A stretch of 64,000 nucleotides of DNA, taken from Podarcis bocagei. Its lineage: Eukaryota. The position numbers and the translations under genes were made by a program. The stretch's first letter is position 1. The number at the start of each line of letters is the position of its first letter. The notes beneath the pieces are model-generated. The model worked only from the letters and a program-made list of their open reading frames with translations, had not been told where the DNA came from and ran no database searches. This document shows, piece by piece, positions 38,756-64,000 of this stretch. The DNA lies in assembly GCA_964188305.1 (NCBI GenBank), contig OZ076888.1; one strand, written 5' to 3'.

Positions 38756-38882
38756 NNNNNNNNNNNNNNNNNNNNNNNNNNNNNNNNNNNNNNNNNNNNN
38801 NNNNNNNNNNNNNNNNNNNNNNNNNNNNNNNNNNNNNNNNNNNNNNNNNNNNNNNNNNNNNNNNNNNNNNNNNNNNNNNNNN
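38756..38882. other. Assembly gap (127 N)
   Basis: Run of N. Confidence 1.
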
Positions 38883-39060
38883 NCCTACCTTTTCATTCAA
38901 CTTTTAATCCTTCCTCCTAGCTCGAGGATCAAAAATCTTTTTCATCCAAAAACCACATTCCTGTCTGGGCAACATGCAGGCAAGTGGGAGGGGGGCAGAA
39001 GTGAAGGTAGACAGAGCAATGAATGCAAAGATCACCTTTGTACAACAGGCGCTGCTTTCT

Positions 39061-46174: not shown

Positions 46175-46287
46175 TTATAAATAAAAGTCAAATGTGAGGT
46201 CACACTTTCCCATTTTCTGTTTGTAAACCAAATCAAACTTCTCATTCATGGAGACAGTGAAGATGTCTTTCCACAGCCCAACACGTC
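46175..46287 (-). CDS. SULT4A1: SULT4A1 last coding exon 7 (113 bp including TAA)
   Basis: (G)RVGLWKDIFTVSMNEKFDLVYKQKMGKCDLTFDFYL*, matching the recalled human C-terminus; acceptor tttccag. Confidence 0.97.
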
Positions 46288-46702
46288 CTGGAAAAGAGAG
46301 AGAAATTGAGAACCAGAAATTAAGCCGATAATCATTGACAGGATGTGGCAGGACCTGTTAACAAAAACAGCAAGTGTCGTCCTCCAAAAGGGCTAGAGAA
46401 TCCCCCCCCCCCCGCCCCGCTTGCTGGTCACTCTCTCTGACCCTGTAATTCCTGATAGTGTACATCAGGGAGGGTGGGGAGCATCAGGCACGGGGGCCAA
46501 ATGCACTCCTCCAGGCCTCTCTATCTGGCCCTTGGGTCTCTCACCAAGCCACTCCCCCATAACCAGGCCTGCTTCCCACCCCCTGGAGAGCTTTTGCTTG
46601 TCTGGAACATGTCCTTGAACTCAAACGCCTCTTGTTTGCCTGGATAGGAGAGAATGGATGGGGCTGACTGTACAATTGCCTCGCCCACTTTGGCCTCTGG
46701 AC

Positions 46703-46889
46703 CACTGGCGAAGGAAGGGGGTGCAGTCCACCCTGGGTGTCATCCCTGAGGAGGGGTGACATCACCACTGCCCCCAGGATGCTTGCCGTGGGCAGCACCC
46801 CCCTGGGATGCTCGCAGCTCGCCATGGGCGATGCTCCCGTAGGTGGCTAATCCCGCCCCTGGATGCCGTAGCAGCTAGCTCCACCTCTG
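46703..46889. mobile_element. hAT MITE in SULT4A1 intron 6
   Basis: 8-bp TSD CTCTGGAC; imperfect CA(C/G)TGG/AGG-type termini. Confidence 0.7.
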
Positions 46890-48590
46890 CTCTGGACCCA
46901 GCCCACCAGTGACAGACGCCCCCTAGAGGTCCCCCCCACCCCTACTTTAGAGAGGCACAATCTCCCCCTTTGGATGTGACTGGCAACACTCATGCCCACA
47001 AAAATGTTGCCCGCCACGGTGATAATTTAAATAACAAGTATTATATTTTGCGGATAACCATTTTCCAAGGATGTGTATGGATAGCTGGTCGAAGAGTCAC
47101 CCACCTGGGTTCATGAAACTGTGATTTGTGATGGGATATGGAGCAAATGTAAGGAACGTAAGCTAACTCATGGCCTGCTCTCACAGCAACGGGGGGTTAT
47201 CTTCTGAGTAAAGGTCAAGGAGCTAAAAGTGGAGGGAAAATGAAAGAAACCCAACATAAAGCAAAATAATGAAAATGTAGCTGGTGGTAAATTAAACAAA
47301 GCAATAAACTAATTTTAGGCTGATCACAGAATTTTAAATTGCACAAACAAATGAAAAAAGGCAGGCAGAAAACACATATTGATATTTAGGCTGGATTTTG
47401 AAATACGGAAAATTATCACAAATGCAAAGCAGCAAAACAAATAAATTTTTTAAAAAGAAGACATGTATGGATAAAAGGCAGGCAGTGAATAAGTTTGAGC
47501 ATATATTCTGAGAGAAAATGTCTAGGCCAAATGAAGTTCATTCTGGAGGTGGGCTGTTTAAGGGTAGGACAGAGTGCCGGTCCAAAGGCAGTAAGGTGAA
47601 ACCAAGAGAACAACTGTGGCCAGACAGAATTAACAAAAAGGTGACAATTTGGTTGTTCTTCTTTTGGGTACCTTGGGCTGAAGATAAACAAAAGAAGTCA
47701 GGAGAGACAGAGCCACTGTGTCCTCTGTTCTGCAAACACATTCATTACACTTCCAATAAGCTGGTATTTGTGATTGTGGAACAAACCCAATAAATATGTG
47801 CTCCACAGTGGCAACATCTCTGGGCCATACTAGAAGTGACAGTGGCAGTTCAGTTTGTCTAAACATGAAATATGGAGGGGGCAATGGGGGGGGAGAGAGA
47901 AGAGGTGTGGAAGATCAAATTTTAAAAGTGACAGGTGTTCATCGGTGAGGGGAGCTGAGCTGTTGTTAGGAGGGAAGTTCCATTTCCCTTAATCATTTGC
48001 AAACCCCCCTCTTTCTAGATCATCAGAACAGCTCACATCTAGGAGGGTCTTCTTCTTATGCCACGTTCCACACTCTGAAGAGGTGATGGGCTGTCTCCAG
48101 CCCAAGAGGCTCAGTGCCATTTGTCTCCACTGTCCTACTCTGTCGGTTTCCTTCTATTCCCCCAACAGCCCACTGGGAAAGCCAGCGCATTTTGAGCCAA
48201 TCCATACATCAGGAAGCATGTGGTACAGCTCTTCCATTGACAATTTCCCTTTCCCAAACCCAATGGTAAAAAAGGACCAACAGAAAACTAGTATGCCGTG
48301 GAATCATCCCGAAGCACTATCTTTCCATGCTTAGGGAGGTGGTTTTTAAAAAAGGGGTGAAAAAATCCCAGGGAGCATTTTAATATCTACAAACATAAAC
48401 TATTGCTTTCCAGTCCCAAAAAGGTTCTACTACATGCTTCTGAATCTATAGGCAAGCTCCTTGGCATCATAGTAAGTATCTGACGACAGAGAAGGTGCAG
48501 CACTTCTATTTCAACCTCTGTATCTGCAAGTGCCGCAATTGTTGAGGCCCACAGCACCTGCCTTCCACTTTTACAAATATTTGCACATAC

Positions 48591-48729
48591 CTCTGCCCAC
48601 AGGAAGGGCTTCTGCATTGCAGCACTGGTCAATGAGCTGGTGACAATGTTCCACCATGGACTCCAGCTGTGCTTTGTCGTAAGAGACGCCCAGGAACCTC
48701 GCCAGCTGTTCGACCATAGTTGCCAGATC
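48591..48729 (-). CDS. SULT4A1: SULT4A1 coding exon 6 (139 bp)
   Basis: DLATMVEQLARFLGVSYDKAQLESMVEHCHQLIDQCCNAEALPVGR(G); cacag/GTATGT boundaries. Confidence 0.97.
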
Positions 48730-49401
48730 CTGTGACGAAAGATTATGTGCACGTGCCAATAAAGAGAAAAGCCAAAAAGAGAGGAAGGTTAGCAATAACA
48801 AATGAGCCCTGCAAGCAGCCATAGACGTATGTGTTAGCAGAGTCGAGAGCAGCATCCTAAAATCAGTGGTATAGACTCATTTTTCAGGTCCTAACTAAAG
48901 CAGCTGAATAGCTAAAATCAGATTTAAAGATTCCTTGCAAATGGCTTGTAATAGCGTTGTGAATATCAGTTCCCTACTGTAGGCGAATGACAATAGCCTA
49001 ACTAAGATATAAATGCTCTAATCCAGACAGGCATTCCCTAGGGGGGAACAGTGGCATGAATTGGTAGGCACTGCCTGTGTAGATTCTGACACTAACCAAG
49101 CCCCATTCATATGCCCCTGCTCCGTGCACAGCCATCCCAACAACAGCAGCCCAGGCCATTTATTTTGCGGGGGGGGGGGAGAGAAGCAGAGGGCTCAGTT
49201 TAGGGCCACACCCTATCACAAACCAGTAGTAGATGGCTAGAAATCTGAGCGGGCTCCTGTTCACTTAGCTCCATCTCACAGATTGGACAAACATCCCTCT
49301 GCTCTGAGGGGGCAAAGTTGGAAAAAAGACAAATAGTGTGTCTAAAAGGTGCTCTCTTTCAAAGGCAAAAGGGATGAAGGCTCCCCCAACACCCACGGTC
49401 C

Positions 49402-49942
49402 TGAGCACACCTTGCACAAGGAAGACAATTGACTGGCAGTTTAATTCTTTATTGACAAAGCACAAACTTACAGTTTGTAATTAGGAAGCTGAGCCCCACT
49501 CCCCACTTAAGATTTGTGCTCTGAGCTAGACTGATGGAGCAACAGCGCGGCCACATAAACACCAAAACTTAAGTACTCTCGTCTGAGACACTAAGAGCAA
49601 GCAACCTGTGACTTCTTGTACACAGAAGCTGTTGCTATGCTTGGCTCTTCAAGCCCTTCCTGGTTCTAGGGGACATCAGGGGAGAAGACAGAGTGGGGAA
49701 CGGGATTCGGCCACCACCACCCGGCCCTTCAGGCAGTGTCTCTCCCTGCACTCCTGGTGAGTTCTGTCCTGGCTCCTGCCCTGGCTCCTGCCCTGTGTCC
49801 CAACACTCCGTGTCCGACACTCCTTCCCACCCTCCAGCTGCTCAGACCTCTCCCCAGCTCTGACTGCTACCTTTCTGGAGGCACAAAACCCTATGAATCA
49901 CTACTCCCTTCCCCTAGATCAGCCTCTGGCCCTGCCCTGACA
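49402..49942 (-). mobile_element. Probable solo LTR
   Basis: Minus strand TGTCAGGG...CA, with AATAAA ~45 nt from the 3' end and a 4-bp TSD GTCC. Confidence 0.55.
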
Positions 49943-50329
49943 GTCCTTAACACACACACACACACCAGAATGGAGGAAACTGTCTACCAGCCCCAGAGCC
50001 CTGAAATGGCTTACTAATTTTCATTGTGATCCTGGCAAGGCTTCGGATTTGCCAAATTTGCCCCTCCATTCCATTTGGATTGCTTTGTTGTTTGCTTTCT
50101 TTTATTCATTTGACTAATATGCTTCTCCTGCAATTTAATACCCCATCTCATTTCAGAAACTGATTCTTATAAAATATAAGTATCACTGCAAGTCACAAAA
50201 TTCCATTCAATGGTAACTGGTATCAGTCAGGAGGGGATCTCCAGTTCTGATCAGAGATACCCTGGGGTGGGATGGGGGGAGTCCATAGGTAACAAGGGAG
50301 AGGGGGGAGCCTTTATACAATATGTTTAC

Positions 50330-50424
50330 CTTGTGCATATCTTCATACTTGAGAAAGAGAACATTGGAGTCCATGTGATGTTGCCAAAACTCCTGCACAT
50401 GTTCAAACCATGAACCGTATCCTA
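50330..50424 (-). CDS. SULT4A1: SULT4A1 coding exon 5 (95 bp)
   Basis: (L)GYGSWFEHVQEFWQHHMDSNVLFLKYEDMHK; ctacag/GTAAAC boundaries; phase consistent with exon 4. Confidence 0.97.
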
Positions 50425-51048
50425 CTGTAGAGACAGAAAATAGAATGGCTAATACGCAAGGACATCACTTTTAGTTAAATTTCTCTGAAACATAAAAGCT
50501 GGAAAGAAGTGCATGAACTGAATTTTGTTGCCTTGTTCTCTAACAAAAACTATTAGAGGAGTATGTACGGTCTTTACAATATAAGTATATTCAGATTTAT
50601 CCTTGTTTTGAATCATAAAAACCTCTCCAGATTCTGTGTGCAGGCAATGTGAAAATCAAACATAAGAGAGAGGATGGAAAACCAACAAGACATGTGAATC
50701 TGGTTAAGTTGCACTCACCATTTGCATGTTTAAGTCTGAATACATATTTGCTTCTGGTGTAGAACTTGACCCAGTTATGCATGATGGTTCCTACTAAAAG
50801 CTGAAACCCTGTACGGTTTAGGAATACGTGACCAATGGCCAGCTTGAATGGTGGTGTGACAACTCAAGTGGCACAAGGAGTGGTGGGCAGTGGCACCTGA
50901 CTAGGCCTAATTAATAGCGTCCGGTCTGTATTCCTGCCTGCGTCTCCCATACTGAACAGCTGCTTGTTTCCTGGGTCAGCTCAGAAATGAAGCCACATCA
51001 ACGCACAGGTAGTTGCACATGTACTATAAGCAAACTAGAGGTGAACTA

Positions 51049-51647
51049 TGTGGGATGTAATCCACTGGAAGCAGTCAAATACAACATTCCTTGTTTTGCT
51101 AGAGTGGACATGCAAGGGAATGTTTGGTCCAGTCAGTCGAAACTTCCTGTTCTTCCTGGCCTGGAGCATCCTTCCTTGCATGTGACTAGTAGGTGGGCGT
51201 GACCTTCTCAGACCAGGCAAAAGGCCAAGTCACGCAGCCACTTCCCTCTCTTTGACCTTCCTGTTTGTCCTGTCTGCTTCCTGAATCACCTGGACTGGAC
51301 TGCTGGCCGCCACAGCAGTCTCCTGGTTTTCTCCCATTTGGGGTAAACCTGTTTGTACATGTTTGTAACTTTAAGCTTAAAGCCTGCCTTCAGGGATCAC
51401 ACTGTGCTCTGCCTGATCGTGAGTAAAACTATTTTTTGTTACTTATGGATAAGACTGTGGTGCCTTTATTCTTTTAAGAGGGATTCAAATTGCTTATTGT
51501 CTTAAGGAACTCACACGAGTTTGCAACCAGCTTTCTGCTGCGTAAGAAGGGGAATGCACACTGCTAAGTGAAGAAACTTGCTAGCGGAAGTTAGGAAGGT
51601 TATTGATAAACAATATATCCTCTCCTGCCACCCTCAACATTCCCACA
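51049..51647 (+). mobile_element. Solo LTR (599 bp)
   Basis: TGTGGGATGT...ACATTCCCACA inverted termini; 5-bp TSD AACTA. Confidence 0.8.
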
Positions 51648-52529
51648 AACTATCTACTGTAATATACTTTGGGCACTTGCTAAAGAAGTTGGCTGCCCAT
51701 GGGGTAAGGCCTCCAGAACTTTAGATGGGATCTCCTGAATGATAAAATAATCACCTACCCCTGCCATCACCATGCTGCCATGTTTTAGCTATGTGGTTAG
51801 TGAATGTAACTGGCAGCCCCATCTCTGATATGGAGCTAAATAAATCTTTTGGTAGCACTTGTCTCTGTCTTATTCCTCCTTCCAATGCAACTTTAGTGTC
51901 ATCATAAAGGGTGCTTCATTTTGTCTATATTCACTCATTGTAATTCCATGGGTGCTCAGATGTGCACACCAATTCATTCAGATAGAGGCATCACAAAGGG
52001 ATTAATTTCAGGAAAGGGACCCAGACTTTGCATACATTCCTCTGGGAAAGGAAATTTTGGGAGCACCAAAAAGCAATCTCTGAATATATTCCAATATATT
52101 TAGCGACTTCTGGTGACTTCAGAGAGAATCTTCTGTAACTTACAGCTGCATTTCATGTGAGATTCATCTTTAGCAAGTGCCTACATCGGCCTTCTCCAAG
52201 TTGGTGCCCTCCTGATGTTGTTGTACTACAACTCCCATCCTCCCAGACCATTAGCCATGCTGGCTGGAGCTGAAGGGAGCAGCAGCCCAACAAGGCCTTG
52301 CAGTTCACAGGTTCCTCATTGCTGATGCAGAGCATCCATCTCAATATCCAAGGTGTGTGGTGGAGGTCCCTCAATCAGGTGAAGGCAAATGCCAACATGA
52401 ACGGTTTGAACCAGAACTTTAGAGGCATTACAAGCAAGACGGTTTCACACTTTGTTCCTAAGAAGTGGTGCAGAACAGAATTTGAAACATTAAAAGGAAC
52501 TGCCAATAGCCAGTGTCAAACTTTCTTAC

Positions 52530-52656
52530 ACTTTTCATTCATGAATCTCCGACAGAACTCTTGAAATGTTCCTCTGTAGCTCATGGTTCGTAGGGAGCGG
52601 TGAAACTGGTAATAAGACACTACCAGGTCTTTGGGGTTGCGAGCCATGTAGATTAC
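52530..52656 (-). CDS. SULT4A1: SULT4A1 coding exon 4 (127 bp)
   Basis: VIYMARNPKDLVVSYYQFHRSLRTMSYRGTFQEFCRRFMNEK, containing the sulfotransferase 3'-phosphate-binding RNPKD..S motif; AG/GTAAG boundaries. Not in the ORF track. Confidence 0.97.
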
Positions 52657-52767
52657 CTAAGAACATGGAAATTATTCATCTTAATCAGTGGATATTTCTC
52701 TCACCCTACCCTGCTCCATTTCACAAAACACACCGGGAAGAAATAATACAAAGCTAACCATTCTTAC

Positions 52768-52848
52768 CTTGGACTCACCACTGTGTAGGTCTGAAGGCAA
52801 AAAACGATACGGCAGGTGGCTTTTGATGAGGCGGGGAGATGTAAGCTC
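52768..52848 (-). CDS. SULT4A1: SULT4A1 coding exon 3 (81 bp)
   Basis: ELTSPRLIKSHLPYRFLPSDLHSGESK; acceptor ttttacag, donor GTAAGA; phase 0/0. Confidence 0.97.
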
Positions 52849-54111
52849 CTGTAAAATACATGATGGAAAACAAGCCAATAAATAATATATCCCTTCTTCT
52901 AAGTGATCCAGATTCCTCTTTGTTATGCTCCTGTATTTATAACTTCCAGTTTCATATTTCCAGCCAAAAGCTTTGGTGGTTCAGACACCAAGTTACTACT
53001 ACAGGAACATGCATGCTTCGGTTTCTTTGCTATGCAGTCAACACTCCTCTCTGCTGCTCAAAAGAGCCACGTGTTTTCTCTCTGTGGTTGTTACTGGTTT
53101 CTGTGCTGCTCCAGTTGTACATGAATCAGGCCACATTCCCAGTGCCTGGGCATTTTGAGCAGCATGTTATATAGACAGACACAAAACTGAAACCCAAGGT
53201 CAGGAAGGTGAGTCAAAAGGGACTGCTGCAGCATTTTAATAAGCAATTCCAGCAAACTACAGTACTTGCAGAGTTGTTAAGGCCTCACTTTTCCAGCACT
53301 AGACTAATACCCAGACTCCGTTTCAGAAAAGAGAAGGGGGTCTGTTAAAATCCACTGATCTTTCCCATTTAATTCTTCCTCCCTCGTCCACAACCATAGA
53401 TTCCAGTAGGGGAAATAGGATAGCACAGACACTGCACTGCCCTCAGCTGACCTGGAGAAATGTAGAGCAGCTGCCTCCGATAGTTTCATTTTAGCTAGAG
53501 AGATGCGCCAATGAAATTAAATAGAACACACCACTTGAGAAAACACACCGGGGCGGTTTAAAAAACAACAACAAAAAACTGGTGCTCCTCTCTAGTTACA
53601 CACCCCTGACTTACGCACTCCATGCAGTTTCAGTATAATGTTTTGATAGGGAAGGATGCCCTGTCTATTGGATAAGGGTGGAGAGCAGGACTGCTGTGCT
53701 GGTTTTTGCACATTTCTTGTGATGCAGAAATCCCCTTTGGATACATTTTGCTGCATCTAGCTATTCATTAAATAGACTCCCAGGTGTGGCTTAAAAGCAA
53801 GCTGGTGTGACCATATTCCAGGAAACAGCAAGAAGATATCAAAGGGGCGTTGTCTCACACCTCTTAAGAATGCATGGAGAGCCCTGCCGAATCCGTCCAA
53901 AGTCCTGACTAGTCCAGTATTCTGCACTCCCAGTGGCCAACCAGGTGCCCTTCCATGCCTGTAATGCCCTTCTCCTGAAACAGCCACAGTGGTGGCAATA
54001 AAGAACTATTTCTCTGGAAAGGTGGCGAGTCTCCTTTCCTGACCTCATTAAGGGGAATTTTTGAGTTGTGGTTTAATGTAATTCTAGAGCATTTAAACCA
54101 TGAAAAGTTAT

Positions 54112-54548
54112 TGTAGTGGTTGGGAGTTACTCGTGCGTAATCCTGCCCCGTTTGAGCATTGGATTGCCTGGTTAAACCCTCCGGACTGCACAGCCCATCT
54201 CAGCGTGGCTGCCCTTAGTCACTCATAGAATCTGTCTGTGGGCGTTTCTTAAAGCGTTGCCAACATAAGAGCTGTTTGACGCCCAATCGTCTCCGCCTCT
54301 CACTGCGCGGGAGTCTCCTGCGCAGGGTGGGCGTGGGCAGCGGGGTGCTTGGGCTCTCCTCACTAACTTCCAACGAAGAGTCCGGGAGCCTCTGCACCTC
54401 CCTGTCCCGTTGCTCTCCTGGATCCCTGGTGTTACACTCATTCTCTTCCCCTTCTTCCCAGCTGAGTCTCCCCCTAGCGCTGGGACCTTCTCCTGCAGAA
54501 TCAGAGACCCTCTCCTTCTCCCGTGCCTCTGATGGCAGTTCCCTGACA
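54112..54548 (-). mobile_element. Solo LTR (437 bp)
   Basis: TGT...ACA termini and 5-bp TSD GTTAT; CpG-retaining interior. Confidence 0.75.
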
Positions 54549-55331
54549 GTTATCTTTTAAAAATGAGTGGGATGGGGAGTAAATCTAAGAAACTTTTAAA
54601 AATAAAAATCTACCCATCCACCCACCTTCCAGGGTATATTTTCATTTAGAACAGTGCTTTCCAAGATTCAGGTTTATGATGCTATATGCCAGTGATGTGT
54701 TTCATGTTAAGTTGGTACTGGAAAAAACATACTTGATGGATTTTGTCGGGTTCAAGCTTGATAAAAGTTTCTTTCATTGCATAGGTTTGGACTAGATGAC
54801 CCTCGTGGTCGCTCGCAATTCTATAATTCTGTTATTCTAAGTCCCTGCCAATAGACTTGCAGTCTAATAAAACATGAAACACAAAAGAAGAAAATGGGAA
54901 AAGACTGCAAATGATGAAGAGAAGAGCCTGTGTTAAAACCCAAATCAGTGTGTTTGGAATATTTACTTAAAAGACAACAAAGAAAAGACCTGATGAATTT
55001 CTAAATTCTGATGGGGGAGAATACACAGTTCCTCTTTGGCACTTCCTGATAACATACAAAGCAGCTGCCTTGGGACACTCCACTTTCACAACAAGAAAGG
55101 TAAACCGGTGCCTCTCACTGAAGCACTTAAGCAGCTGAATGTTACCTGAAAGCATAATATATCTTACAAAAATGTTTCAGCAAACTATTAGGGCAACCCA
55201 ATAAATTATGAATCATTCCAGTACACTTAAGGGGAATTAAAAGGGAGCTCTGAAAATAGAAGCCAAATAAGCAGAGGTAAAATGAAAATAATTGCAACTG
55301 GTCAACACGTTTTCAGTCGCTTAAGACGTAC

Positions 55332-55462
55332 CTTGATAATGTCCAGTCCAGGCTGAGGATACTCTAGGACTGGAAGCTGCTCGTCTATGTTCATTAACCC
55401 AATTTCATCGGGATCGGCTCCCTGGCTCACCAAATACACCACTTCCTGCAATAAGCTGGTGC
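55332..55462 (-). CDS. SULT4A1: SULT4A1 coding exon 2 (131 bp)
   Basis: Minus strand reads (G)TSLLQEVVYLVSQGADPDEIGLMNIDEQLPVLEYPQPGLDIIK, matching the recalled human SULT4A1; flanked by ttgcag and GTAC splice sites. Confidence 0.97.
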
Positions 55463-58780: not shown

Positions 58781-59030
58781 CAGTGGCAGAAGAACTCTCC
58801 CCGCATCCGGGGCAGCACAGCCCGTATGGACTGCGCATGCGCGGAAGCCCCTACAATCACCGTGCGCAAGAGTGGCAGCCTGTACGGATGGCACGCAAGA
58901 GACGCCCATACGGACTGCGGGCGCCCTCAGCCGCTCTGCAGCTGGGGAGAGGCAGGGGCCATCTTGTCACCCCTCCCAGAATGGCACCCGGGGTGGCCCT
59001 CCCCCTCTGCCCCCGCTTCCTACGCCACTG
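58781..59030. mobile_element. hAT MITE
   Basis: CAGTGGC...GCCACTG termini; 8-bp TSD GCTCCAGT. Confidence 0.85.
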
Positions 59031-59079
59031 GCTCCAGTCACTATAAAAATTGATAGTTGTGGACACATCTTCCCATATA

Positions 59080-59333
59080 CAGTCAAACCTCAGGTTACAG
59101 ATGCTTCAGGTTGTGCGATTTCGGGTTGTGCACTGCGCAGATCCCAGAAGTACCGGAATGGGTTACTTCCGGATTTCGGCGCATGTGCAGAAGCACTAAA
59201 TTGCGCTTTGTGCATGTGCAGAAGACTGAATCGCGACCCGCGCGTGTGCAGACATGGCGCTGTGGGTTGCGAACGTTTCAGGTTGCAAACGTGCTTCCCG
59301 CACGGATCATGTTCGCAACTTGAGTGTCCACTG
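59080..59333. mobile_element. Tigger-like MITE
   Basis: TA-CAGT...ACTG-TA ends with a hairpin-like interior. Confidence 0.7.
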
Positions 59334-60769: not shown

Positions 60770-60900
60770 CAAAAGATACCCTTTAAGACCAGTAAAAGAT
60801 GGAGGACTATCCCTCCCTTGTGTTATTAAAAAATATTACAAAGCAGCTGTGTGAGCTCATTTGAGGGTCTGGTTAAAATAAAAAACAACATCAGTAATTG
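60770..60900 (+). mobile_element. Old L1 ORF2 fragment
   Basis: Degenerate KDGGLSLP...KYYKAA motif. Confidence 0.4.
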
Positions 60901-61356
60901 AGTAATACAGTAAAGCAATAGATTTTTTAAAAAATATAGTATGGTATTGTATCAGAATGAACCCTGCTAGATCCATTAATAATTTTATTTGGATATATTA
61001 AGCATAGTATTACCAGACCTGGTAATAAAGATGCTAACAGCTACATTTATGTACCCAGTTCCTTGATAACATCCAGATAACCACCCTATTCCATTAGCCT
61101 GACAGTATGCTTTTTAATTAGGAATGAAATGCCTCCTTTTTCTATCCTTTTTTTTTTTTTTTTTTTGCTTATTCTAGGCTTTCTTTTGCTTATATTCTGT
61201 ACTATACAAACTTATTTAAAAGACATTGCCAGGTTAATATTTTTCTCTCTGTTGACACAACTGGAATATGCTGTAGTAAAACAATATTACCTTGCGAACA
61301 ATATTCATTTTTATTGCAGATATATGTGCTGAAAAAGATAATTAAAACCTTCTATA

Positions 61357-61555
61357 CCGTATTTTTCGTCCTATAGGGTGCACCGGCCCATAGGACGCAC
61401 CTCGTTTTTTGGGGGGAGGGGAAATGAATAAAAAAAAATTATTCCCCCCCCCCGCCACGGCTGCCGCCCCAAGCCTTGCGCACACCTGCCCGAACCACGG
61501 GGCACCCTCCGGAGGGCTCCGCGTGCTTCGGGCGACAGGCTGCCACCCCAAGCCT
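61357..61555 (+). mobile_element. Partial Tc2/pogo-like element with a GC-rich interior
   Basis: TA-CCGTATTTTTCG...GACGCACCT left end; no right TIR seen. Confidence 0.6.
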
Positions 61556-61817
61556 CTAAACAAACAGGCTTAATTTTAGGGTATTTATACTATCCTGTTT
61601 CTGCAGTGAACTGTGGCTGGCATCTGTTTAAATGAGGTCAGATATTAATTTTTATTTATACAAATATTTATATACAGTTATGCCATTAAAAAAAATCAAA
61701 GTGGCTTACAACAATGATATCTATATGCAATAGAAATGTTATGTTTGGTACCATGGCTGACACTGCCACAATCATAGTATCTAAATCACTGGAGCCAATC
61801 AATTTTACCCTCTAAGT

Positions 61818-62551
61818 CAGTGTTTCCCAACCGGTGTTCCGCGGCACACTAGTGTGCCGTGAGACGTTGGCTGGTGTGCCGTGGGAGGGAGGCGGGCGAG
61901 GCGGGCGGTGAGAGGCGGCGGCGGCGAGGATCCGCGTCGAGCTGGGGGCGGCTCCGCGGTGGTGGTGCCGAGGTTTCTCTCTCTATTCTCCCCTCACACA
62001 CACACACAGGAAATAGCACAGGATCAGCTGACAGGACCCAGCCAATGGGGCGGCGGCGGGGCAGCGCGTGCAAAAGGGAGGAGCGCGAGACAGCGGACGA
62101 GGAGGAGGCCGGCATGTCCGGGCAGCAGCAGCAACAACAGCAGCAGCAACTCCCGGCGACGGCTCCTCAAGCCCCGGGCAACCCTACTCCCTCACCGGCC
62201 TCGGCCGCCCTCCTGCTCCACCCGCCGCCGCCTCCCCCGCCGCCGCCGGCCACCTCGGCCCCGCCACCGCCCCTCCTCCGCCCGCTATCGCCGCCACCAC
62301 CACAACAGCCGCCGCCGCCTCAGCTGCCGCCGTCCCTCAGTCCCTCGCTTTGCTGCCTCCTCCCCCCCCACCCCCAAAGCTTGGAGGTTCCCCGGCAAGG
62401 GGGAGGGGAAAAAATTGAAAACTTTCACTTTCGTGCGTCCCTCCCGGCGTGACGCTGCGCGCTGACGTCACGGGGCTGTAATGGTGGTGTGCCGCGAGAT
62501 TTTTTTCATCAAACAAGTGTGCCTTTGCCCAAAAAAGGTTGGGAAACACTG
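61818..62551 (+). mobile_element. Non-autonomous hAT element carrying a captured host gene fragment (RANBP9-like 5' end)
   Basis: Perfect 15-bp TIRs CAGTGTTTCCCAACC/GGTTGGGAAACACTG; 8-bp TSD CTCTAAGT (61810-61817, 62552-62559); subterminal GTGTGCC repeats; CpG-island-like cargo. Confidence 0.92.
62114..62452 (+). pseudogene. RANBP9: Captured RANBP9-like exon-1 fragment; 112-aa chimeric ORF whose stop lies near the transposon right arm
   Basis: MSGQQQQQQQQQL...SAALLLHPPPPPPPPPATSAPPPP versus recalled human RANBP9 MSGQPPPPPPQQQQQQQQL...AAALLLHPPPPPPPATAAPPPP; ATG context GCCGGCATGT. The SPRY domain is absent. Confidence 0.7.
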
Positions 62552-64000
62552 CTCTAAGTGAGTGACCAACCTCCAGACCACATAGCATTGCTCCTCTGGG
62601 CAACTCCTGGAGGATGCAACAGAGACAACAAAGAATGACCTCTTCACTGCTCCCTCAGCCACACATTAGTCTGAGTGTGCTCCGTCGGCAATAATCCCAA
62701 AATTTCCAGCCCTATACTTGCTTCTCAATAGGCAAAGCAGGACTGGGGGCACATGTAAGGGGAAAGTGATGGGTTTGCCAGAGGGTGGGGCTGAGCCCTT
62801 CTCTCCTTGCAGCAGCTCACCAGACATTTCCCCCCACTTGACTGAGAAGTCCATGGTTATCACCCAACTTCTACTGCTGCCCTGGCCTCCTTTGTTTTAG
62901 AATCCACATTCACCTCCACTTATGTGGTTACAGGGAAACAAGAAGTGCGGGTTTCGTTTTGGGAATAATATCTGAAAAGCTACTTTTGGAGAGATGTGCA
63001 AGTTTCTGAATGCAGAATGAATTTGTGCATGTCCGTCATGCAAGTCCCACCAGCAACTTGAAAATAGGAAGAGCAAGCGCCATGTGCTTTTTGTTCTCTG
63101 CAAGTGAATAGAGTCTGAAGGAGATTAATGCTCAAGAGTGTGGTGTTTATAACATGTGCCTGGAGATAGCAAATCAGAAGAATTTTCGGGGGAAAGTCTC
63201 CATGTAATTATGAAAGGAAAAGTTGAAAGTGGAAAAGTTGACAGCATTTCCCTTTCATCCAGCAAATAAAAACATCCTGGTACATACATGTAACAATTCA
63301 AAGAGTGCAACTAGAGCTAATGCTTACAAGGCCTAAATCAATTTTAAATTAACCTCAACTGGAGTCTGTTCTGCTGTAATATCCAATCTACACAACCACT
63401 AGAATCACAAATGTTACCACTTTTCTTGTTTTCCTTTGCGGACCAGAGAATCCCATCTTTGAATACTTCCCCAGGTCAAAAACACCTTGAGTCTGGTTAT
63501 GGTGTGATTAAGAGACACATTCTTAGCATATTTGCAAGGAATCAAGCCTTAAGGAAAATAACAATTAAGCAAAGGCTGCAACAGATATGAATCTAGTGCA
63601 GGATTCATAAAAGAGAAACGTTTTAAAAGACTTGGGAGGGGGAAGGAATCAAGCAGAGCTTTTAGTGCTTTGCTTCCTGCATGCCATAAATATTTCAGAT
63701 GTACAGCTAAAGAAAGCAATAAAGATGTAGCCAGCCAATTCTAATGTGGCATTCGCACGCTACTGCTGCATCGGTGCAGTCTACCACATTCAACTGAACA
63801 TTTGCCCAGGACATGGCAGAATCCTTAACAGTAACAATGATGACTGAATACTGCAATAAGCAGGTGCAAATAAATACTTCATTCAGGTGTGTGCCCTCTT
63901 CTCCTGAAGCTCTCCTACATTGTGCAACAAAGATATTATTTGTCCAGGGTGGTATCTCCTGCACCTTGAGTCCATCTATAAGAAGGGGGGGGGGGGCAAA

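Follow-up and report, generated by a model that had tools for sequence, protein, structure and literature searches.

A hAT-type element without a transposase gene is present at positions 61818-62551 (734 bp) of a 64-kb stretch of DNA from the lizard Podarcis bocagei, in an intron of the gene SULT4A1. The stretch, referred to below in its whole length as the window, comes from contig OZ076888.1 of the GenBank assembly GCA_964188305.1. The element consists of two arms, ending in terminal inverted repeats (TIRs) and bordered by a target site duplication (TSD), and of a CpG-rich interior that includes a segment apparently derived from the first exon of the gene RANBP9 and an open reading frame (ORF) starting in it. 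The features of the locus are listed here with their position, strand and the evidence on which they were defined; P0128 and the other models mentioned are predicted proteins of Podarcis muralis.

61810-61817, no strand: left TSD copy, CTCTAAGT; repeat finder, single copy in the empty-site contig of DNA run X11.
61818-61832, plus strand: 5' TIR, CAGTGTTTCCCAACC; repeat search, RNA and DNA reads of other copies diverging exactly before 61818.
61818-61881, plus strand: 5' arm common to the hAT family, with GTGTGCC/GGCACAC at 61843, 61852 and 61874; word depth 1.6-3.6 million, other subfamilies diverging after 61881.
61882-62102, plus strand: CpG-rich upstream segment with GGC runs, a CT/CA microsatellite (61976-62011), a CCAAT box (62041-62045) and a GC box; depth 0.4-0.7 million, similar to that of the RANBP9 piece.
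62103-62335, plus strand: probable RANBP9 exon-1 fragment, reaching from 11 nt 5' of the ATG to codon 75 or so, with the frame kept to about 62285 and shifted thereafter; blastn and alignment A1.
62114-62452, plus strand: ORF of 112 codons and a stop (TGA, 62450-62452), the start codon corresponding to that of RANBP9 and the frame no longer that of RANBP9 beyond about codon 57.
62336-62478, plus strand: 3' interior segment with a cAMP response element (CRE)-like motif, TGACGTCA, at 62465-62472 and a copy-specific interferon-stimulated response element (ISRE)-like motif at 62419-62434; the C terminus of P0128 matches 62387-62462.
62479-62551, plus strand: 3' arm common to the whole family, with GTGTGCC at 62487 and 62517; in DNA and RNA runs 62479 is also the junction with an alternative, AT-rich interior.
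62537-62551, minus strand: 3' TIR; repeat search, its translation WETL ending four P. muralis models.
62552-62559, no strand: right TSD copy, CTCTAAGT; repeat finder and empty-site contig.

The two TIRs are complementary at 15 of 15 positions according to the repeat finder, and in a search allowing up to three mismatches they were the sole pair of the 64-kb window with none. TIRs of hAT elements begin with YARNG and are short (about 10-25 bp); those of the present element measure 15 bp and start with CAGTG. The exact direct repeat of 8 bp on which they abut has the length of a hAT TSD, and by our own arithmetic about 1e-8 such combinations of a perfect 15-nt inverted pair and an abutting exact 8-nt direct repeat are expected by chance in the region. 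When the element was compared by blastn with the window, the arms were found to be about 76% alike over roughly 42 nt, and neither blastn nor the TIR search gave a second copy of the element in the 64 kb. Moreover, five of the 14 copies of GTGTGCC/GGCACAC present in the window lie inside the approximately 150 bp of the two arms (the rate in the window being 0.22 per kb), an enrichment that fits transposase-binding repeats, so that these motifs can be considered putative binding sites. The target consensus of hAT elements is nTnnnnAn, or NTCTAGAN for the MER1 type, a point on which a literature search gave nothing useful. The TSD CTCTAAGT has the T at position 2 but a G at position 7, and the TSD of the most expressed sister copy, CTCTAGAG, fits the MER1-type target.

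The element has a GC content of 66-78% and a CpG observed/expected ratio of 0.86-1.07, against 0.19 in the 3' flank. No transposase ORF was found in it: all its long ORFs are low-complexity GC-rich frames, and the three forward frames are all open because the sequence is GC-rich. Furthermore, Pfam gave nothing in the 112-aa ORF, nor in the protein sequences P0131, P0045 and P0129, Rfam gave no match over 60800-63000, and the element contains no poly(A) tract. A first-pass annotation, made from the letters of the stretch, had described an element of 734 bp with perfect 15-bp TIRs, an exact 8-bp TSD and no transposase, and a CpG-rich interior with a CCAAT box and an ATG at 62114; the repeat finder, the ORF and Pfam analyses and the base composition confirm this description.

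The history of the insertion was read from contigs of the DNA runs X1 (organism A) and X11 (organism F) and from the RNA data sets X15 and X23 (organism F), placed on 61400-62950. In a single-copy X11 contig of 1509 nt (word depth 95), 61556-61809 is followed directly by 62552-62945. The joint from 61809 to 62552 omits 742 bases, that is 734 + 8, and leaves one CTCTAAGT, whose eight letters fit either side; this contig is the exact unoccupied target site. As its flanks show 17 differences from the window in 648 positions, X11 comes from a related but different lizard, and the exact empty site with a single CTCTAAGT in such a relative indicates that the insertion is real and recent, as had been proposed in the first-pass annotation. 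In X1, whose flanks are nearly identical to the window (two substitutions in 399 positions), the same empty-site joint is seen with only 22 + 8 letters on the short (left) side, and another contig ends exactly at 61817. These data hint at a possible polymorphism of the insertion or at its restriction to the sequenced lineage.

SULT4A1, the gene in which the element lies, is encoded on the minus strand, with exon 2 (GTSLLQEVVYLVSQGADPDEIGLMNIDEQLPVLEYPQPGLDIIK) at about 55460-55340 and later exons at about 52.8, 52.6, 50.4 and 46.3 kb. Exon 1 was not found in 55.5-64 kb and is therefore placed beyond the end of the window, which puts the element in intron 1 and its ORF on the antisense strand of the gene. 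The earlier assignment to SULT4A1 intron 1 is consistent with this arrangement (exon 2 onward at 55.4-46.3 kb on the minus strand, exon 1 outside the window).

From the ATG at 62114 the ORF reads MSG-Q9-L...AALLLH-P9-ATSAPPPP. A word-indexed protein search with this 112-aa sequence matched two Logan-derived ORFs. One of these sequences, P0002, starts with MSGQQPQQLPATTPLAPSNPSPSPASAALLLHPPPPPPPPPATSAPPPP and continues into the conserved end of RANBP9 exon 1, and both in P0002 and in its cluster mate P0131 the series MSGQ-polyQ...AALLLH-polyP...ATSAPPPP and the conserved exon-1 end are found in one ORF. When P0002 was used as a query, the best named relatives of its conserved part were entries of RAN-binding protein 9 (96% in Galemys, 88% in Seriola), and sauropsid RANBP10 entries gave 66-78% against the same part. 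The contigs from which P0002 and P0131 derive, L001 (2182 nt) and L003 (1159 nt), share 95.6% identity, have an 800-bp CpG island 5' of the ATG and do not carry hAT arms. Judging from these characters, they appear to represent the bona fide RANBP9 exon 1 of another squamate, not a transposon-borne copy, and they are used here as the comparator.

By blastn the window matches L001 and L003 over 62106-62285 with 80-82% identity (E-values of 1.6e-44 and 3.7e-49, respectively). In alignment A1 the start codons coincide and the similarity begins 11 nt 5' of the ATG. Between the CAG and the CCG runs lies a block of 76 nt in which 62-64 positions are shared with L001 and L003 without gaps (82-84%), with z values of 18-22 against dinucleotide-preserving shuffles; a match of this kind outside the repeats cannot be put down to low complexity. 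From about 62285 onward the RANBP9 reading shifts frame, PATAPPPPAIAATTTTAAAAS corresponding to PPPPAVAAAATTTTATT of P0002, and can be followed to about 62335, at approximately codon 75. Segment 62103-62335 is thus considered, on the strength of these alignments, a homologue of RANBP9 exon 1 that starts 11 nt 5' of the ATG and ends at about codon 75. The resemblance to the RANBP9 N-terminus recognised in the first-pass annotation holds for this segment, at the nucleotide level, outside the CAG/CCG runs and with respect to another squamate. The accompanying idea of a captured exon 1 is right as to the start of the exon, but only about half of it is found here (codons 1 to about 75, frameshifted after about 57), probably in a deletion form. 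The collinear blastn match to RANBP9 that had been anticipated was obtained, with the comparator, for the start of exon 1 and does not extend upstream past 11 nt before the ATG.

A further Logan contig, from ERR14042001 (L002:1-1751), matches 62099-62273 with its first 163 nt or so (92% overall, near-identical apart from a 12-nt gap). Beyond this part it passes into another CpG-island-like sequence, which has an ATG of its own and a GTGAGT donor, and finally into AT-rich unique DNA; hAT ends are absent. The contig may be a rearranged copy beside the start of another gene or a chimera formed in the de Bruijn assembly across the CCG run, and it was not used as evidence.

Sister copies of the element are recognised in the proteome of P. 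muralis, where at least 15 distinct UniProt gene models carry pieces of RANBP9 exon 1, some of them fused to the transposon end or interior. These are P0006 and P0129 (UniProt A0A670K2D3 and A0A670IR65) together with P0007, P0009, P0011, P0023, P0044, P0122-P0128 and P0130. Eight models start with a peptide 100% identical to the +1 frame of 62131-62223 and then continue with EKELKRRL...HYKG, the 3' half of exon 1; three others (P0023, P0044 and P0130) start with residues encoded by 61911-61940 and make the same jump to the exon-1 3' half. Four models end in HYKG-WETL followed by different residues; as WETL is the translation of the 3' TIR, the end of exon 1 and that of the transposon adjoin each other at four different loci. 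In P0128 the sequence ...NNLRV is joined to VPWQGGGEKIETYTFVRPSRCDAAR, which matches 62387-62462 of the element, and the 3' interior segment 62336-62478 is located in sister copies 3' of the exon-1 3' half. Other models run from HYKG into RGTEGGRGRGHRHPQAPSASSSERQAEKLPGKL, a G-rich tail (RGTEGGRGRG...) that resembles the intron read-through of the comparator (EGVGEGEG..., EGGGGR) and does not correspond to exon 2, whose sequence in P0045 and P0103 is HGKTPKDAASV. A protein search specific for the tail returned only the same four UniProt models.

The simplest reading of these models is that the progenitor carried unspliced genomic DNA, with the whole of exon 1 and some downstream sequence, and that the 734-bp copy would be an internal-deletion derivative without codons ~76-148. 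The view that capture took place at the DNA level and not by retroposition, already expressed in the first-pass annotation, finds indirect support in the P. muralis sister copies, which appear to be unspliced past HYKG. Two of the transposon-borne models are labelled RANBP10 by their source; their sequence is closer to RANBP9 and the label is taken for a naming error. In general, the short P. muralis gene models built on RANBP9 exon-1 fragments look like annotation pollution by the transposon family.

The size of this family is reflected in the summed word depth of the contigs, which is about 95 in the unique flanks, in both DNA runs, and 2.2-3.6 million over the arms. Over the cargo it amounts to 0.55-0.68 million at 61920-61971 and 0.24-0.75 million at sites in 62040-62098, and at 62336-62439 it reaches 0.9-1.4 million, roughly double the value at the cargo centre; depth was computed outside the repeat stretches 61976-62011 and 62118-62256. 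Among the contigs placed (9520 from X1 and 8081 from X11), about 29% are at least 99% alike, 35-37% fall between 95 and 99%, 27-29% between 90 and 95%, and 6-7% below 90%. Agreement in the flanks is only 0.45-0.49 at 61818 and 62556, with divergence exactly before 61818 and shortly after the 3' end, and this points to many different insertion sites. The cargo seems to have spread to hundreds or thousands of sites in wall lizards. The element is not an isolated novelty: both the word depth and the P. muralis models assign it to a very abundant family. A literature search with the TIR sequence and with the terms RANBP9, transposon and lizard, or Podarcis and hAT, found no description of this lizard family.

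What other subfamilies have in common with the element is limited to 61818-61881 and 62479-62551; an AT-rich interior meets the 3' arm at 62479, and the junction of a very short form follows 61881. Only the SULT4A1-intron copy has the ISRE-like run at 62419-62434, most copies reading CTTACACTTTC in its place (including 62425 T>A). In a common variant, present in DNA contigs, RNA contigs and raw RNA reads, 48 nt within 62369-62418 are replaced by the 16 letters GGCAAGGGGAAGGGAA, and another variant, seen in 15 RNA reads, joins 61930 to 62300. These variants indicate that the family comprises several sublineages defined by insertions and deletions.

The element is very probably one copy of a non-autonomous hAT family, MER1/Charlie-like, of lacertid (Podarcis-type) lizards, whose interior includes about 230 bp from the host RANBP9 exon 1. 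An ancestral member of the family would have acquired genomic, unspliced RANBP9 DNA with the whole of exon 1 as a minimum and, probably, the beginning of intron 1. The capture may have occurred by template switching in gap repair or replication, as proposed for the Pack-TIRs, and the resulting chimera would have been mobilised in trans by an autonomous hAT transposase able to recognise the TIRs and the subterminal GTGTGCC repeats. Internal deletions would then have given rise to several forms, among them the 734-bp one, and the copy in SULT4A1 intron 1 would represent a recent landing, antisense to the gene.

Several points weigh against this origin. The cargo and its parent were compared across species, at 80-84% identity, the comparator being the RANBP9 of another squamate, and the alignments with this comparator leave 61882-62102 and 62336-62478 without an established source. 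The scheme of deletion derivatives was drawn from protein models of the longer sister copies and not from their DNA. Although the ratios of the summed contig word depths indicate copies of the order of 10^3 for the cargo and 10^4 for the arms, such depths are not copy numbers, and unitig overlaps inflate them perhaps 1.6-fold. Among the contigs listed none bridges the filled junctions, the occupied state resting on the assembly itself; a TSD would not arise from an assembly error. Finally, composition-adjusted BLASTP of the ORF against P0131 gave an E-value of 3.4 for a 32/40 N-terminal match, and phmmer with the 112-aa ORF against 1.84 billion representative proteins returned no RANBP9, its sole match being P0001, another transposon-derived ORF. 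These two failures could be taken to mean that the interior resembles RANBP9 only through shared polyQ/polyP and a GC-rich composition, an explanation that deserves next to no credence: it is contradicted by the ungapped 76-nt non-repeat block, the start codons and their context align exactly, and in the sister copies the 3' half of exon 1, which is not repetitive, is unmistakable. RANBP9 was presumably missed by phmmer and BLASTP owing to low complexity, under which protein-level statistics fail, and for this reason the nucleotide alignments were relied on. It is also highly improbable that the cargo derives from a processed RANBP9 mRNA, as a retrocopy landed in or copied into a hAT element. 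The start of the homology near the ATG and the lack of clear intron sequence in the SULT4A1-intron copy would agree with such a source, but the P. muralis sister copies pass from HYKG into the G-rich sequence like the comparator intron read-through, instead of exon 2, and no poly(A) tract is present.

How much of the interior beyond exon 1 came from RANBP9 is a separate matter. In the first-pass annotation a single capture was thought to have taken the RANBP9 promoter, the 5' untranslated region (5'UTR) and the start of exon 1 as one collinear block, so that 61890-62400 would be RANBP9 throughout and the element would carry a mobile housekeeping promoter; this is conceivable, and on the present evidence rather doubtful. 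The summed depth of 61920-62127 equals that of the RANBP9 coding piece, which means that the two were amplified together, and a CCAAT box and a GC box are situated 60-75 nt 5' of the ATG. In addition, a single GC-rich match of 22 nt connects 61887-61908 to the comparator promoter (21/22 identical, inverted), and the GC-rich motif, a CA-rich run and the CCAAT box follow in the same order in 61882-62102 and in the comparator promoter, a correspondence that is suggestive at most as support for homology. The comparator being from another species, divergence of non-coding sequence could hide a homology. However, 61882-62105 has no collinear similarity to the 1536 nt 5' of the ATG in L001 (z of -0.1), nor to L003, and in alignment A1 the similarity ends 11 nt before the ATG, despite a fast-evolving coding part that, unlike the upstream segment, is still 80-84% identical to the comparator. 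Likewise, 62341-62478, in the 3' interior, found no match in 540 nt of L003 intron 1. The capture of promoter and 5'UTR is not upheld by these comparisons, in which the homology starts 11 nt before the ATG and 61882-62102 is without a collinear match to the upstream CpG island of the comparator. A role for the element as a portable CpG-island promoter, giving an antisense transcript or a polyQ/polyP micro-protein inside SULT4A1, like HelibatN3 in bats, is very unlikely. Such a role would be in keeping with the CpG observed/expected ratio of about 0.9, with the CCAAT, GC-box and CRE-like motifs, with the RANBP9 start context retained by the ORF and with the finding of family copies in RNA-seq. 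In the RNA-seq of organism F, however, the family sequence occurs on both strands (25-280 reads per position) with heterogeneous flanks and no pile-up of read starts or ends, as expected from passive read-through of many copies. The depth of RNA is zero on the unique flanks of the locus and, because the DNA run X11 of the same organism shows the empty site, its RNA says nothing on the SULT4A1-intron copy. In this copy at least five CpG-to-TpG/CpA changes with respect to the family majority (61860, 61909, 61943, 62040 and 62069) indicate a lineage not shielded from methylation decay, the ISRE-like motif is private, and the natural exon-1 splice donor is deleted. No evidence of a function of the element, or of an effect on SULT4A1, was found in the RNA, motif and ORF data. 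The element most likely has no function, and the 112-codon ORF is most likely what is left of the RANBP9 start, continued by GC-rich sequence that is out of frame.

The proposed capture belongs to a known type. In a survey of 100 animal genomes 370 Pack-TIRs were counted, 208 of which are hAT elements (Tan et al., 2021; PMC8277862). Multicopy cases numbered only four, of few copies each, and tended to have a GC-rich cargo; the multicopy Pack-hAT-N8_XT of Xenopus tropicalis carries the CAPSL 5'UTR, and no lizard case is mentioned in the survey (PMC8277862). The P. bocagei element resembles the Pack-TIRs in being a non-autonomous TIR element, as these are mostly of the hAT superfamily, with the interior replaced by GC-rich host gene DNA, a parent gene unlinked to the transposon, and a transposition after capture shown by different TSDs or flanks. 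In fact, both transposon ends are found around the cargo, the cargo source in L001 and L003 is without hAT arms, and the same chimera occurs with many flanks. It differs in the depth ratios, which point to hundreds or thousands of cargo copies, and in the presence of several deletion forms. The element is a capture of the Pack-TIR type, unusually amplified for a vertebrate hAT. With the MER1/Charlie-type non-autonomous hATs it has in common the CAGTG ends, the 8-bp TSD, the subterminal repeats, the lack of transposase and possibly a target resembling NTCTAGAN, whereas ordinary members of that group carry deletion remnants of the autonomous element and not host coding sequence.

The closest analogue in scale is HelibatN3, a Myotis Helitron that captured the promoter, the first six codons and the splice donor of NUBPL (Grabundzija et al., 2016, PMC4778049; Thomas et al., 2014, PMC4224331). 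In Myotis, 4,690 copies of Helitron-captured promoters have been reported (PMC4778049). In both cases a vertebrate DNA transposon took up the 5' end of a housekeeping gene and was amplified, apparently so in the lizard, to thousands of copies, with gene starts scattered through the genome. HelibatN3, in contrast, is a rolling-circle element with neither TIR nor TSD, its capture occurred by read-through transduction, and its promoter activity and exon trapping have been demonstrated experimentally, while a promoter origin or activity of the lizard element is hypothetical; moreover, the SULT4A1-intron copy has lost the exon-1 splice donor, whereas HelibatN3 captured that of NUBPL. The Pack-MULEs of rice and other plants also carry gene fragments between the TIRs of a cut-and-paste element, in multiple copies and with a GC-rich 5' bias (PMC8277862), and differ from the hAT element of the lizard, with its 8-bp TSD and 15-bp TIRs, in that they are members of the Mutator superfamily, whose TSDs measure 9 bp and whose TIRs are long.

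In plants there is ample documentation of cut-and-paste transposons taking up gene fragments, and in animals such capture is mostly represented by single copies. If the cargo has indeed reached hundreds to thousands of sites, no other Pack-TIR known in a vertebrate would have been amplified as strongly, and the spread of an amplified promoter or first exon would be, if true, the cut-and-paste counterpart of HelibatN3/NUBPL in bats. It is a speculative and improbable extension of the data that thousands of wall-lizard copies, two to three orders of magnitude beyond the multicopy animal Pack-TIRs reported, scatter a CpG-island-like RANBP9-start module and that some of them may serve as promoters or first exons, or may give rise to small RNAs against RANBP9. 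The family constitutes a natural system for the study of the capture process and of the fate of a dispersed CpG-rich cargo, to which insertions recent enough to be absent in a sister species add interest, and it offers polymorphic insertion markers in Podarcis. It also matters for annotation, two of the P. muralis gene models built on its copies being named RANBP10. The SULT4A1-intron copy alone adds little.

Some minor features of the window can be mentioned. SULT4A1 is intact at the motif level from exon 2 to the last exon (46279-55460, minus strand), where GTSLLQEVVYLV, LIKSHLPYRF, VIYMARNPKDLV, GYGSWFEHVQEFW and GLWKDIFTVSMNEKFDLVYKQKMGKCDLTFDFYL followed by the stop are recognised. In the same intron as the element a weaker CpG-rich patch is found at 58801-59100 (GC 0.62, CpG observed/expected 0.63), in which no SULT4A1 exon-1 motif was recognised. 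Just 5' of the element, 61400-61555 belongs to a different high-copy repeat, with a summed depth of 39,000-178,000 against about 95, and 35 nt of it (61405-61439) are shared, with three mismatches, with a very abundant RNA of run X23 (about 1,300 reads, one strand). Finally, a run of 128 N at 38756-38883 marks an assembly gap or a masked stretch.

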